Part shown: piece after piece, positions 5,697 to 11,109 of the stretch
How positions within the stretch are numbered: position 1 is the first letter of the stretch
How the letters are laid out: each line of letters begins with the position of its first letter
DNA from: Oikopleura dioica
Taxonomy: Eukaryota > Animalia > Chordata
Direction: 5' to 3'
DNA length: 64,000 bases
Assembly (NCBI GenBank): GCA_907165135.1
Contig: OU015569.1
Location: 2,294,001 to 2,358,000 of the forward strand
Program-made: the position numbers and the translations under genes
Notes under the pieces: model-generated
The model's database searches: none
Told to the model about the DNA's origin: nothing
The model's input: only the letters and a program-made list of their open reading frames with translations

Positions 5697-7178
5697 AAAG
5701 AACATCGGACAATCGCAATAATTTCAACTCCGCAGTACTTCAAAAAACCTTCTTTTATCAGAAAAAAGGAACACAGGTGCTCCTTTTTTAAATTTATCCA
5801 CTTACCTTTCCTTTACTTGTATTATTTGAGCGGTAAACCCTAAAGATGATGCTGCTCTCCATTAATAATCGTTCGGACAAAGACTTTTTTGTCGGTTCCT
5901 CTTTGAAAGTAATTTTGTTTTTTAACGATCTTCTTAAAATTGATCGTGACGTTAAAAAAGTCCTTTTCTGGTCTTTTTGTCTCTGGAAAACTGCTTCAAT
6001 TCCGGACATTTTGTATAACAAAAATTTTGACTTTTATCAACCTACAAAACAAACTCGTATTCTTCATTCTAAAAGTCTGTTTAATTTTTATTGTGCCCAC
6101 TTAGAACTAACAGAAATGTTACTTCCGGGCTCTTTTTTTATCAAAATGCTTGCTTGCCTATTTTTTCAAAACCAAAACATACTACTATTCTTCTTCTTCT
6201 TTTGCTTTGGACAGAAGAAGAACATTCAAGAGTCTCTTGTCAGACTTGTTAAAAAGAAAATATCCAAATATTGTATTCTGAAATTCACCAGCTTCACAAC
6301 TCTCTTTTTTAATCTCTGGACCTACAAAATATGTCATTTCATCAAATATTCATAACTTCAACCTATTCATAAAAAATAAAGACAAAAACTATCGCTGCTG
6401 ATTGTCACTAAGTTCCCACTCAGTGGTTCCTAAATCCAACAGACAAAAAGTTGCCACTGGTATTAGCTGTACGAATTCATTTCTGTTCAACGTTTTTTTC
6501 CTTTCCTCGAACTATCGCAAACGCTTTGTGGCGGTAAATTGAAACTCATCTGTCTTGGCCAATTTTTATTGTGCAATAATATAATAATAATGATCCGATA
6601 GAGCTCGAGTTGAAACTGAACCCGCTTGACCAATCCTAGTTTTATTACTGTACTGGTATTTAACGATTTAACTCATTAAATCATCGAAGAACACTGGCGA
6701 CTAGTACCAGTGGCAATTTGAGGCATGCAAAAACGAAGATGTCTATAGAGAATATGGTTTTAGCGTAAGTTACCGATCTTGAGTAGTGGAAGACCAATCC
6801 GTAAAATAGGATCTTGACGCACGATTAAAGTAGGAGGGATGAAGGAAAGATGCCTGGTCAGGCGGGTTCAGTCACAAGTTCACGGCTTGCGAGCGGTTAC
6901 ATAATACTAGCTGGATTCAGATTTTGTCAATATTGAAGCTTTCCCGTTCGGGTTCAGCCGAGGGCGCGGCGCTTCTCACGACCAGTGGCCGTTTTTGTCG
7001 ACTCAAGTTGAAGTGGAGCGACCCCACGTTACCCAGCCATTGCTACTTACGCTCCAGCCAAAATAATAAAGAAAAGAGAAATTATAAACCAAGGATTGTA
7101 AATACAAACTGAGAGAAAGTGAGAAGGAATAACTACACACAGCACGAGGCGTGATCTACTGATGGACCCCGAGGATAA

Positions 7179-10010
7179 ATGCTGATCTTTTTCTTACTGG
7201 CTACGACGATACTCAGTGAAAGCGACTTTTCTGGTAATAAAAGTTTTTTTTTTACTTCTATCATTCTACAAAGAACATGAAGTGCTCAAGAAGTTGAACA
7301 TCCTTTTTAGAGAATCTCTGGTACAACTCGTTCGCGGACAGCGACGGGAAACTCGAGTACTCGTGCGTCGGAACTCCACGAAAAAATCCTGCGGAAACCG
7401 CCAGCGACGTTATTGGACCCTTCGAGGAGCTACGTCAGCAGTACCCGACAATATGTTCCTGCTACGACGATGTTCGAAACGAAGAACTTTGTCCCATCGA
7501 CGTGAAGGCCGAGGCGGACAGCTGCGGACTTGTGTGCAAGATCAACTGCCGCAATCAGCGCGACCCGCTCAAATGCTTTGACAATCAGACGGGCGAACTT
7601 ACAGAAGGGACGGGCTCTAATGCAAACTCCTTGTAGTCTAGACTTATTCTTTTTTCGCAGGGAGCAGTTGCGACAAATATTACATTTCCTCGATACAGTA
7701 CGTGACTGTAGTTGCTCATGTGCGTGTTTTCTGTCTGCAATGGTTCGGCTTCCAGATCAGCCTTTTTCAGCCAATAAAATAAATTATTTATTGAGCCCGA
7801 ACTCAGGTGCTCCGCAAAACCGAAGCTGCACCTTTCACCTCCGCTTCCCTTTTGAACCCGAGAACGACAAGCTTTATCCCTTTCCAGCGCGCGAGGACAA
7901 TGGCTACTTCATCGAACACATTTATCGCAGTTGTCTTCACAAAAACTATGAGAACGATCAAGGTGAGTTCACTTTCTGCCATTTCTCTATCTTATCCATG
8001 GTTTTCTAGTTGACGACGCAGTGGCGCATCCCTTTTACTACTGCCAAAGCGTTGACTCGTGTCAGATTCTTGATTGTACCAATTTAACCGTCGAAAATAT
8101 CATGTTTTATTACAGCGACATTGGTAAGTAGCCACTTTATTTTTCCTGGACATCCAGTTTGAATAATTATCGCTAAAACGATTTTTAAACGTAGACAGAA
8201 GCTATTACTATCATCTTCGTAAGTTACTACAGATTACTAAGTATACTACTGGAGACTAAAAGACTCGAAATTCTTCGCGATTTTAACAAGAAGTCATTAC
8301 TAGAAATACTAGAATCAAAAATCTTCATTTCTAATTTACGGGTGTGTCTTTTAGTTGGAGTGTCTTATCCTTAAAATCGCGAGGCAATCCTCCCATTCGA
8401 CTGGTCGTTGGTTAATTCAAAGTTAAGATCATTTTCCTGCGCAGAAAACGACGCCCGACAGGCACTTCATTTGCTCGTGCGATTACCCTTTCGTCAGTGC
8501 CCCTGGAGAACGCAACTTCACCAGTTGCAAGGCAAACGTCGAAGCCGTCTGGGCAGAGCTCAACTCGTTCAACGCTTTAGAAAAGTGCCTTATTGTCAAT
8601 CAATGTAACACTGCTTGCGCTCAAGAGAAAAACGCCGCCAACTTGAGGTAATGCTCGAGAACTGCTTCTGTTCCACGAGATCTTACTCTTGCTTAGTATG
8701 AACAAGAAGTTGCGGCAAATCTGCGGCCAAGTTGGCGGACCAAACACCTTCCTGCTTTGGATTTGCTTCTTTGCCGTTTCGACGGCCGTGTTGTTCGTGC
8801 TCGTCGCTTACCGCCGTTGCAAGAGTTTTGGCTTTCGCGGTTCTGGTGGTCATGGGACAGACGCCGGCGCCACGGAAGTCACAATCCTTGTTGATTCCCG
8901 AGAAGAGCCTCTTCTCAAAGCTCTGAAAGTCTTCGAAGGTAGACGCTTGTAGTTGAAACAATCTCTCATCTCTCGCTTTTCAGGAAGCATTGAGACGAAG
9001 GCGGTCCCATACATTCTCACCAAGTTCCGTGATTTATATTCTCAAAGTTCAATCTTCGGCAGCATAACTTCTTCTGACGTTCTCAACGGGCGCCTGCCCC
9101 ATCATTTCCTAGAACTTGACGCGTTTCTTCAAAGCCACTGTATTAATCAGGTGAGGGCGAAGCGAAGTAATCAGTCTTGCTGACGATCGAGTTCAGAATT
9201 CTTATCTTGACGATAACAAAGTTATCAAACTGCTCTACGATCTGAGTTGGTGGATCAACGAGCTCCACGGATCAGACCACGGAGGCCACAATGACAAATG
9301 GAGCCAAGAGCCAAAGACCTGGAGCATTTTTCACGGCGCAATCAATCCAACTAACATCAGAATCTGTATCCAAAACAACTGTACATATCTCATAGGTAGG
9401 CTCTTACAGTCTCACAGTCGAAAACTCAAACTCAGTCGTCAACTTCGCAACTGCCTCAGATCTACTTAATCAGCAAACTGTAAATAACCCATGTTACAAT
9501 GAAGACTCAAAGGTAAAGAGCGCAAATGATTGCAAACAGGGACTTACTATCCGTTTAGCTGAGCTTCCATGGAAATTACCTGCCGCCCGAAATGATTACT
9601 AACCCTGAGAAGTCGGAGAAACGTTGCGTCTTGTCGGCGGATATCTACGCTTTCGCTTGCATTGCTTGGAAACTGCTTCACGCCTCTGTCGATCCTGCTT
9701 GCGCGCTAGAAGACCCTTATGACAGAGAGCTTAAAAAACTCAAAAGCGAAGTGCCAAATAGCTCGGAGCTGAGCGATAGCCAGAGCTTGAAGCTCCTTTT
9801 TGAGGATCGCTCGTTGAGGCCTAGCTTGTCTTTCGCTCGCGCCGAGCAGGACAAAATCGTCGACCTAATAAGTAAGGCGATTCAGTAGAACGGAGTCTAT
9901 TTTGCCCCTTTTCAGATGACTGTTGGGTAGAACAGCCCGCGCTTAGATTGACTGCCGCACAACTCTTCCATCGTGTGAATGAGCTGTCCAGATGTTCTTC
10001 ATCAGTTTGA
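7179..10010 (+). CDS. Single-pass receptor: signal peptide, Cys-rich ectodomain, TM helix, TGF-beta-receptor-like (TKL) pseudokinase domain
   Basis: Exon 1 MLIFFLLATTIL; exon phases chain consistently (7179-7233, 7311-7606, 7661-7697, 7807-7962, 8010-8123, 8428-8647, 8697 onward). TM FLLWICFFAVSTAVLFVLVAY then RRCK. Kinase-like motifs ALKVF, FHGAINPTNIRI, VVNFA, GNYLPPEM, SADIYAFACIAWKL, LRPSL, DCW..RLTA. Confidence 0.72.
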
Positions 10011-10468
10011 CTGTTTCTGTTCAAATGACTATTATTATCAAAAAGAACACTTATTATCCTAATAAAGACCAAAATTCACTCAAATAAAACAGAAAATACT
10101 TATGTCGTTGTCTTTTTAGCAAGATAGAATCAAAGGGGAGTGCATGAAAATTGAAAATTTGAATCCAATCAATCCGCGTTATTTATTCAATAAGTTCAGG
10201 CATATAATAACAATAATTTTGCCCATTTCACTTTCGCCGAAAATTCCAGTTCAGGAACAGGTGATATCGGGGATTTCCTTCATGTCTATCGTTCTTTTGA
10301 GATCCAAGCTGCTCTATCAAAGAAATCATCAAAATCGTTCGCTTTTTGTACTTTTCCCTTCAATGTCTGCGAATTTATGTTACAGGCTGGATAGGCAGAT
10401 ATTACTAATGAGGCATGGCAAGTTATTGAGCAACTTTCGATCAATCTGTTGACCAGAGTGTTCTTAGA

Positions 10469-11109
10469 ATGGAGGCTAATGCGAACGAGGCCCCACAAGA
10501 GCCCAAGAACCCTTACCTCGATTCTGACTTTGACTTTGGAAAAGAAAATGCCTTCATGTTGAACGAAGTGCAGAACGACATCGCCTTCAATTTGAATAAA
10601 ATCCAGCAGAAATATATTTACTCCAAAATGGGTAGGGACGCTTTTGGCTTGAAAAATGACATTATTGCGGTTTTTTGGTAGCAAAGATGTACAGATGCAT
10701 GGCTGATTGCGAAGAGACAGAAAGTCGCGTTCGAGAGATTCCTCGTTGCCAGGCCGAGTGCTCGGAGAAGTTTGTCACTCCTGCGCGGCGCATCATCGAG
10801 GCCGAAGTCGACAGAGTCAACAACATGATCAATTTTGAATTGGATGAGTGCATCCAGACGGCGCGTAGCACCATTTACTCGGACAGTTTTAAAGAAGGTA
10901 AGTTGACTAGCTGGAATCGGGAATGAGTGCGATTTTTAGAAAACCGAGAAGCTGTGAATAACGAATATATGTTCTGCAACAAGATCGCATTGTCTGCCTT
11001 TAGCTCGCTCGTAAAGGGTGGCAAGTTTCTGGAGAAAGTCGGCAATAGACTCGAAGCAGAAACGCGAAGGGATGCAAAACTCGCCCAGACTGCCAAGAAG
11101 AGGCGATAG
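10469..11109 (+). CDS. FAM136A/DUF842-like small helical protein (3 exons)
   Basis: Two GT-AG introns keep frame. KMAKMYRCMADCEE..RCQAECSE gives twin CX3C motifs in the FAM136A arrangement (recalled similarity only). Confidence 0.5.

Follow-up and report, generated by a model that had tools for sequence, protein, structure and literature searches.

As far as we know, every receptor described so far in the TGF-beta receptor kinase family, hereafter serine/threonine kinase receptors (STKRs), is an active kinase, and BAMBI, which has no kinase domain, is the only dead relative that has been described. Receptor pseudokinases are well known in the receptor tyrosine kinase (RTK) and plant receptor-like kinase (RLK) families. 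Here, we analyse a gene of Oikopleura dioica, a planktonic tunicate (appendicularian) and a chordate laboratory model with a much-reduced developmental toolkit. It lies in a stretch of 64,000 nucleotides (assembly GCA_907165135.1, contig OU015569.1, positions 2,294,001-2,358,000 of the forward strand); this whole stretch is called the window and all coordinates refer to it. The gene occupies positions 7179-10010 of the + strand and comprises 11 exons that, once the spliced model is translated, form one intact open reading frame (ORF) of 644 amino acids. Its product consists of a signal peptide, a cysteine-rich ectodomain of about 280 residues, a transmembrane helix (8749-8811) and a kinase-like domain of about 300 residues. 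This protein is very likely a receptor pseudokinase derived from the STKRs. We further consider it probable that it is a lineage-specific (appendicularian) type I membrane receptor, whose pseudokinase descended from an STKR and would signal non-catalytically. To our knowledge, an STKR-type pseudokinase on a novel ectodomain is new, receptor pseudokinases and BAMBI being already known, and a non-exhaustive search of the literature found neither a description of an appendicularian TGF-beta receptor pseudokinase nor a counter-example.

The protein shares with the STKRs (ACVR1/ALK2, BMPR1B, TGFBR1; TGFBR2, ACVR2A/B, BMPR2) a single-pass type I topology and a cytoplasmic kinase-fold domain, and its best sequence matches, which extend from the hinge to alpha-I, are almost exclusively these receptors. 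Taken singly, the exons of the window gave nothing significant against Pfam and PDB, being too short and too diverged. The near-identical orthologue P0011 and other homologues served as search and folding proxies for the spliced window protein, and significance rests on full-length orthologues and on profiles. The family has seven members: the window protein, five full-length proteins (P0002, P0009, P0010, P0011 and P0012), all encoded by transcript contigs of about 2.2-2.4 kb, and L004, a marine-metagenome genomic contig that carries a further member with larger introns. P0011 (locus L009) comes from a transcript of a sibling lineage and is 82% identical to the window protein from end to end, with the same architecture and the same dead motifs. 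The Pfam models Pkinase / PK_Tyr_Ser-Thr match P0002, P0009, P0010 and P0011 with E-values of 1e-5 to 3e-5, scores that reach or narrowly miss the gathering thresholds, and P0012 with an E-value of 1.5e-4; in P0009, the match spans alpha-C to alpha-I. When P0002, P0009 and P0011 were compared by phmmer to all PDB sequences, a set that takes in thousands of kinase chains, STKRs came first and every match with E<0.009 was an STKR (including TGFBR2, 6e-5; ACVR1, 5e-5; and BMPR1B, ACVR2A/B, TGFBR1, ACVRL1 and BMPR2). Furthermore, a 10-row family profile (A7) retrieved BMPR1B at 3.3e-9, ACVR1 at 1.4e-7 and TGFBR2 at 8e-7, whereas the best non-STKR reached 2e-3 and the top 30 distinct PDB sequences were all STKRs. 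The first neighbour in ESM-Atlas is a 'receptor protein serine/threonine kinase' cluster (score 0.95, 194 shared features) whose structural neighbours are type I and type II TGF-beta receptors, and the ten best named neighbours are all kinases. On these comparisons, the kinase-like domain can be regarded as specifically closest to the TGF-beta/BMP/activin receptor kinases, in agreement with the original prediction, a first reading of the window made from its letters.

Several sequence traits of STKRs are kept in the domain. Exon 8 (9197-9395) encodes alpha-E (LSWWINELHG, 9242-9271), the catalytic-loop equivalent KTWSIFHGAINPTNIRI (9314-9364) and, between this loop and the 'LH' of alpha-E, the STKR-type insert. 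The K-x-x-I-x-H motif is present, its Lys lying five to six residues before the loop His, as is typical of STKRs. The C-lobe is encoded by exon 10 (9559-9871), which carries YLPPEMI (the APE equivalent, of xPPE/APE type, 9577-9597), alpha-F SADIYAFACIAWK (9634-9672; D(I/V)Y(A/G)F..(I/V).W in STKRs and in this family), EDPYD and LRPSL (9814-9828) with the shared RP. Exon 11 (9916-10010) encodes the STKR-like alpha-I signature DCWVEQPALRLTAAQL (9918-9965), with ECW..P..RLTA as in STKRs, and ends with the stop codon (10008-10010). An origin from another tyrosine kinase-like (TKL) lineage, RIPK/IRAK-like or similar, with the STKR-like motifs being convergent or shared by TKL kinases, would account for the presence of RIPK4, RIPK1 and a plant receptor-like kinase among the weaker matches (E-values of 4e-4 to 3e-2). 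In every search, however, these kinases rank below the STKRs, which lead by about 19 bits when the best profile is used. Three STKR-specific features are present as well: ECW..P..RLTA, K-x-x-I-x-H and the insert that precedes the catalytic loop. This origin is therefore very improbable. The receptor guanylyl cyclases also carry a dead kinase-like domain right after the transmembrane helix, with C-lobe motifs of the CW...RP type. Unlike them, the protein has no dimerisation helix and no cyclase: about 30 residues follow the kinase-like domain, both in the ORF and in the orthologous transcripts. As had been noted at the outset, no guanylyl-cyclase catalytic domain comes after it. No other domain does either, nothing cyclase-like being found after the stop codon and the AATAAA polyadenylation signal (10061-10066), and transcripts L001, L002 and L009 end likewise. 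Receptor-cyclase chains are also absent among the PDB matches.

Of the three key residues whose loss defines pseudokinases (the beta-3 Lys, the HRD Asp and the DFG Asp), the two Asp are absent from the window protein and from every other member of the family. In the window, the catalytic-loop equivalent reads HGAINPTN (9332-9355), HGA standing for HRD and the catalytic Asn being kept. The DFG equivalent reads NFA (9441-9449) within the VVNFATASDL of exon 9 (9436-9512), an exon that also encodes an activation-segment remnant. The original prediction had called the kinase apparently dead, with these two motifs among its grounds; translation of the spliced model places them, together with SADIYAFACIAW (9634-9669), LRPSL, DCWVEQPALRLTA (9918-9956) and its RLTA (9945-9956), exactly where it had seen them. 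HMMER aligned the loop FHGA(L/I)NPTNIRI of P0011 onto AHRDLKSKNILV of ACVR1, with FHGALNPTNIRI placed on AHRDLKSKNILV, and N-Y-K-M-A of P0009 onto D-L-G-L-A; therefore, the motif-to-motif equivalence is not just visual. The HRD equivalent is HGA in the window, P0011, P0010 and L004, HGG in P0012 and YAA in P0002 and P0009, while the DFG Asp is replaced by Asn in all seven members. The catalytic Asn is kept in the HG(A/G) group and is a Lys in P0002 and P0009. In three RNA-seq runs that are labelled as the window's species and come from a diverged sibling lineage (X7-X9; 90-95% identity where they map), the replacement of I by L (HGALNPTN) is the only change within the catalytic-loop motif. Nor does splicing restore HRD or DFG, since the transcripts (P0011/L009) keep the dead motifs. 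Five full-length transcript homologues and the genomic L004 thus carry the same dead motifs, which can be considered as ancestral and maintained in the family. With its kinase hidden Markov model matches and a ratio of nonsynonymous to synonymous substitution rates (omega) of 0.056, the domain has the attributes of a pseudokinase, its fold being assigned from sequence only.

The transmembrane helix FLLWICFFAVSTAVLFVLVAY (8749-8811) is the sole 21-residue hydrophobic stretch, is followed by RRCK and lies at the same place in all homologues; the kinase scaffold that had been described behind it is borne out by the Pfam matches (E of about 1e-5) and by the STKR-first PDB matches. This helix is encoded by exon 6 (8697-8938), as are the end of the ectodomain, a Gly/Ser/Thr-rich juxtamembrane segment and the sequences GSGGHG (8839-8856) and ALKVF (8920-8934). 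Exon 7 (8984-9150), assigned by eye, encodes a degenerate N-lobe that begins with SIETKAVP (8986-9009) and goes on with an alpha-C-like and a beta-4/5-like stretch. The original prediction had taken ALKVF as the beta-3 strand, a choice that is probably about nine residues off. The beta-3 strand with its lysine is probably S(I/V)ETK(A/V)(V/I)P (8986-9009), since it is conserved in the family and fits by eye the VAVKIFP of type II receptors, whereas only the closest lineage shares the lysine of ALKVF. This candidate Lys is present in five of the seven members and replaced by Asn in P0012 and L004. Also by eye, SIFGSITSSD lines up with the STKR motif NILGFIAAD. The claim that no glycine-rich loop lies directly before the beta-3 strand holds for the in-register position in all seven members but needs refining: GSGGHG is a formal GxGxxG motif. 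As it lies 29-38 residues before either candidate beta-3 Lys and is conserved only in the sibling lineage, it is too distant and too lineage-specific and is not a P-loop. In the same juxtamembrane segment, the sibling protein (P0011, residues ~322-335, against window positions 8812-8856) has a tandem duplication of six residues (FGFRGC FGFRGSGGHG) that the window does not have.

Several points weigh against the reading of the protein as a dead STKR derivative. The E-values are modest (1e-5 to 3e-9), the STKR derivation rests on the ranking of scores and not on a tree, and the split between types is ambiguous, type I receptors being the best matches of the profiles and TGFBR2 the best match of P0002 alone. 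The N-lobe alone gave no PDB match and no significant HMMER match. AlphaFold2 models are poor, with a predicted local distance difference test (pLDDT) of 35 for a 6-row alignment, and a pLDDT of 54 and a predicted template modelling score of 0.43 for a 10-row alignment. Foldseek retrieved only protein kinases with the latter model, BMPR1B, ALK1 and ALK2 at the top, at insignificant values (best E 0.07, template modelling score ~0.26) that were not used. The link to TGF-beta signalling would be by descent only, the ectodomain having no signature of the TGF-beta receptor fold. Lastly, several residues persist in the window clade: the HRD His, the catalytic Asn, a beta-3 Lys and an invariant Asp six residues past the DFG position; therefore, nucleotide binding or atypical catalysis is possible.

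These retained residues are compatible with an atypical but active kinase, in which displaced residues would rescue catalysis as in WNK, CASK or haspin-like cases. The H...N of the loop is kept not only in the window clade but also in P0010, P0012 and L004, the K of S(I/V)ETK is found in five of the seven members, and both D492 (the Asp of N-x-x-x-A-x-D) and K457 are invariant. Moreover, within the protein, constraint is strongest in the region around the dead motifs (omega 0.034). Against these observations, both canonical Asp are absent and an in-register glycine-rich loop is lacking in all members. The His and Asn of the loop are missing from P0002 and P0009 and the Lys from P0012 and L004, so that no single catalytic constellation exists family-wide. 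We therefore consider residual activity of this kind as unlikely.

Selection on the gene was estimated by region from the comparison of the window with L009. Omega is 0.056 for the pseudokinase domain (dS 0.87, dN 0.048), and within it the alpha-E / catalytic loop / DFG stretch (residues 446-500) has the lowest value of all, 0.034. It reaches 0.044 for the transmembrane and juxtamembrane segment, 0.11 for the membrane-proximal ectodomain and 0.42 for the membrane-distal ectodomain (residues 19-118, positions 7311-7607). For exons 10-11, omega is 0.069 in the comparison with L003, a TARA genomic contig whose intron sits at the same position but is diverged. Among the 37 listed differences between the window and the sibling lineage (X7-X9), 33 are synonymous. 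The more distant homologues P0002 and P0009 share 80% identity in the C-lobe, against 55% in the ectodomain. The gene is under strong purifying selection, which is most intense at the degenerate catalytic cleft and in the C-lobe. The missing catalytic residues, along with one exon junction that needs a non-canonical donor, could be expected from a decaying pseudogene or a mis-spliced artefact. Decay had been named from the start as an alternative; however, the ORF of 644 residues is intact, the RNA is expressed and spliced, omega is 0.056-0.069 at a dS of 0.65-0.87, and the same motifs recur in full-length transcripts of five other lineages or species, so that the probability of this explanation is close to nil.

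The last coding exon (9916-10010) is near-invariant at the nucleotide level: one of its 95 nucleotides differs from L009 and none of the last ~70 differs from L003. The rest of the gene has a dS of 0.65-1.2, and identity collapses directly past the stop codon. An RNA structure was considered as the cause of this invariance and rejected, the predicted structure being unremarkable (z = +1.0).

The ectodomain has about 280 residues, with 20 cysteines and five N-x-S/T sites, and 13 of its cysteines are invariant across the six full-length sequences, the window's included. No Pfam model, neither Activin_recp nor ecTbetaR2, matched the ectodomain exons of the window or four scanned full-length homologues at E<=1, and the best score of the ectodomain in ESM-Atlas was 0.67, which is the noise level. 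The GS domain of type I STKRs is not recognisable either: TGF_beta_GS (PF08515) did not match the scanned homologues, and the juxtamembrane segment is only loosely Gly/Ser/Thr-rich (GSGGHG in the window, TSGYSNR in P0002) and poorly conserved. Therefore, since its ectodomain does not resemble that of a TGF-beta receptor, the protein would be a derivative of an STKR kinase and not a bona fide TGF-beta receptor. It differs from the STKRs by the loss of the HRD Asp, of the DFG Asp, of the glycine-rich loop and of a recognisable GS domain, and by an ectodomain that is two to three times longer and has neither a recognisable three-finger domain nor known relatives.

A very fast-evolving orthologue of a canonical type I or II TGF-beta/BMP receptor, whose ligand-binding fold would have diverged past recognition while still binding a ligand of the TGF-beta family, has to be weighed at this point. 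Protein evolution is very fast in this lineage, canonical receptors are the best matches, and the Gly/Ser/Thr-rich juxtamembrane segment, about 38 residues upstream of the probable beta-3 Lys, sits roughly at the place of the type I GS motif. However, canonical receptors have ectodomains of about 100-150 residues, none of the searches for their ectodomain folds or for the GS domain retrieved them, and the dead motifs are common to three clades that are only 30-36% identical, which points to an old and stable pseudokinase family and not to recent decay of an orthologue. Such an orthologue is thus rather improbable.

Compared with the cytoplasmic domain, the membrane-distal ectodomain shows a roughly eightfold higher rate of evolution (omega 0.42 vs 0.056), and it is only 48% identical between the sibling lineages. 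This would fit an arms race driven by a ligand or a partner, or relaxed constraint.

As to the distribution of the family, exon 10 (9559-9871) was compared to 1.84 billion representative sequences by an exhaustive phmmer search; only eight proteins were retrieved at E<=1e-3, among them the full-length P0002 (653 residues), which is 45% identical over the exon (E 4.7e-12). A word-indexed search with P0002 alone led only to P0009, and a profile including the window and L004 pieces was needed to reach P0010, P0011 and P0012. The six full-length sequences, that of the window included, fall into three groups that share the same architecture and are mutually 30-36% identical. The transcripts of P0002 and P0009 begin with 3' parts of the Oikopleura spliced leader (PMC6883708), namely its last 23 nucleotides (L001, 1-23) and its last 18 nucleotides (L002, 1-18), respectively, and are therefore appendicularian mRNAs. 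The family is apparently restricted to appendicularians on the sequences retrieved. Positions 1-25 of the L009 contig are an adaptor resembling a template-switch oligonucleotide, without the spliced leader. Since L001 and L002 carry the leader and L009 does not, trans-splicing of this gene may differ between species.

The gene is compact and intron-rich, with introns mostly of 40-50 nucleotides, in a window of 42.5% GC. RNA confirms four introns (8939-8983, 9396-9435, 9513-9558 and 9872-9915), which include both introns flanking exon 9 and both flanking exon 10. Contigs of an oligo-dT marine metatranscriptome (X1), 99-100% identical to the window, lack introns 8939-8983, 9396-9435 and 9513-9558, and reads of X7-X9 confirm introns 9513-9558 and 9872-9915. 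The gene is thus expressed and spliced, and the transcript-derived P0011 is colinear with the ORF of 644 residues. The exact exon 9/10 junction had no match in JGI metagenomes. Intron 9151-9196 is a canonical GT-AG intron of 46 nucleotides outside read coverage, and the alignment of the window protein with P0011 runs uninterrupted across the junction. The AATAAA signal, read from the sequence, lies about 50 nucleotides past the stop codon on the + strand, and read depth is zero in the bin 10059-10175 and beyond.

In the ectodomain, enumeration of GT-AG paths gives more than 1000 solutions, and the model is fixed only by colinearity with the transcript L009/P0011, which settled the two junctions that had been ambiguous (the end of exon 2 at 7607 and the acceptor of exon 5 at 8428). 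Exon 1 (7179-7233) carries the start codon and the signal peptide MLIFFLLATTILSES...; it is colinear with P0011, and loose ends of sibling-lineage reads match its junction with exon 2. The fast-evolving, membrane-distal, cysteine-rich part of the ectodomain is encoded by exon 2 (7311-7607), which is colinear codon by codon with L009/P0011 and whose 3' end was deduced. It is followed by exon 3 (7807-7962, APQNRSCTFHLRFPFEPEN...), exon 4 (8010-8123, VDDAVAHPFYYCQSVDSCQILDC...) and exon 5 (8428-8647, membrane-proximal, DHFPAQKTTPDRHFICSCDYPF...), all on the + strand like the rest of the gene. From colinearity with L009/P0011, intron 7608-7806 (199 nucleotides) is predicted to be a non-canonical GG-AG intron (GGACGG...CTCAG), as no in-frame GT donor gives the length of the orthologue. 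Instead of the GG donor at 7608, the intron could use a GC donor six nucleotides downstream (after 7613) or a GT donor that follows 7632 and would be spliced to 7796. For exon 5, the acceptor 8427/8428 alone keeps the frame with the GTAAGT donor at 8124, and it reproduces the ...SDIDHIPEKLPPDRHFIC of P0011. A model with a 28-nucleotide intron, a micro-exon (7661-7701) and an acceptor at 8445 was rejected, since it breaks the frame. Intron 8124-8427 is 304 nucleotides long, six times the usual intron size of this gene, and its acceptor is weak (AAGTTAAG) and lies 17 nucleotides upstream of a much stronger-looking, out-of-frame acceptor (TTTTCCTGCGCAG at 8444).

The start codon is overlapped by an upstream ORF (uORF) on the + strand, MDPEDKC (7162-7185, stop codon included), read from the sequence. 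In all four available 5' untranslated regions (UTRs), a uORF of 6-7 codons ends on or just before the main start codon: at 7162-7185 in the window, ~130-153 in L009, ~48-69 in L001 and ~59-80 in L002. The two reading frames overlap as ATGCTGA in the window and L009, and abut as TAAATG in L001 and L002. The uORF peptides differ between clades (MDPEDKC, MEDEDKC, MNREGL and MNRKEF) and the position is kept. Since the position and not the peptide is conserved, the placement of the uORF suggests translational control by termination-reinitiation. Further upstream (window 6952-7170), reads of the sibling lineage connect position 6995 with 7170, with diverged sequence between the two; the 5' UTR therefore reaches more than 200 nucleotides upstream of the ATG and is poorly conserved except for a block of about 44 nucleotides (6952-6995). 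Downstream, the next gene is a small three-exon ORF on the + strand (MEANANEAPQEPKNPYLDSDFDFGKENAF...KLAQTAKKRR, 10469-11109). No paralogue of the pseudokinase-receptor gene was found within the window.

The best functional analogy is provided by HER3/ErbB3, RYK, ROR1/2, PTK7 and the plant BIR2. These are also surface receptors with a kinase fold devoid of canonical catalytic residues, and they act as allosteric activators, scaffolds or co-receptors; unlike the protein studied here, they are of tyrosine-kinase or RLK/Pelle descent and have other ectodomains and partners. BAMBI, for its part, is a non-catalytic membrane relative of the TGF-beta receptor family that is thought to form dead complexes. 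However, BAMBI keeps a type I-like ectodomain and no kinase domain, whereas here a dead kinase-like domain is kept and the ectodomain is replaced. Because canonical phosphate transfer is impossible, the pseudokinase domain would signal without phosphotransfer. Most likely, its well-preserved C-lobe and activation-segment surface would dock other proteins, the first candidates being active STKR kinases or their partners, and the receptor could act as a scaffold, as an allosteric partner or as a competitive or dominant-negative partner. The fast-evolving distal ectodomain would sense a ligand, which is probably not a dimer of the TGF-beta family.

STKR kinase domains assemble by C-lobe/C-lobe heterodimers that scaffold the active tetramer (PMC8368100). 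Since these kinases pair by their C-lobes, and since constraint is highest in the C-lobe and the cleft region of this family, docking would be the most economical hypothesis. That the partners are TGF-beta/BMP receptor kinases is a tentative proposal, to which we give somewhat less than even weight. The more specific scheme, in which a dead STKR member would dock via its C-lobe on active BMP/activin receptor kinases and couple or block Smad signalling for a new ligand through its unrelated ectodomain, is speculative and, as it stands, rather doubtful. If such C-lobe docking is true, the TGF-beta pathway would have its first pseudokinase co-receptor, a mirror image of BAMBI. Until a partner, a ligand or a phenotype has been identified, the protein is of limited practical importance. 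The gene indicates that the STKR family can yield receptor pseudokinases, as the RTK and plant RLK families did, and would provide a natural probe for the non-catalytic roles (C-lobe docking, scaffolding) of TGF-beta-receptor kinase domains. It can also be viewed as a lineage-specific signalling component that would have been added to a chordate with a reduced toolkit.

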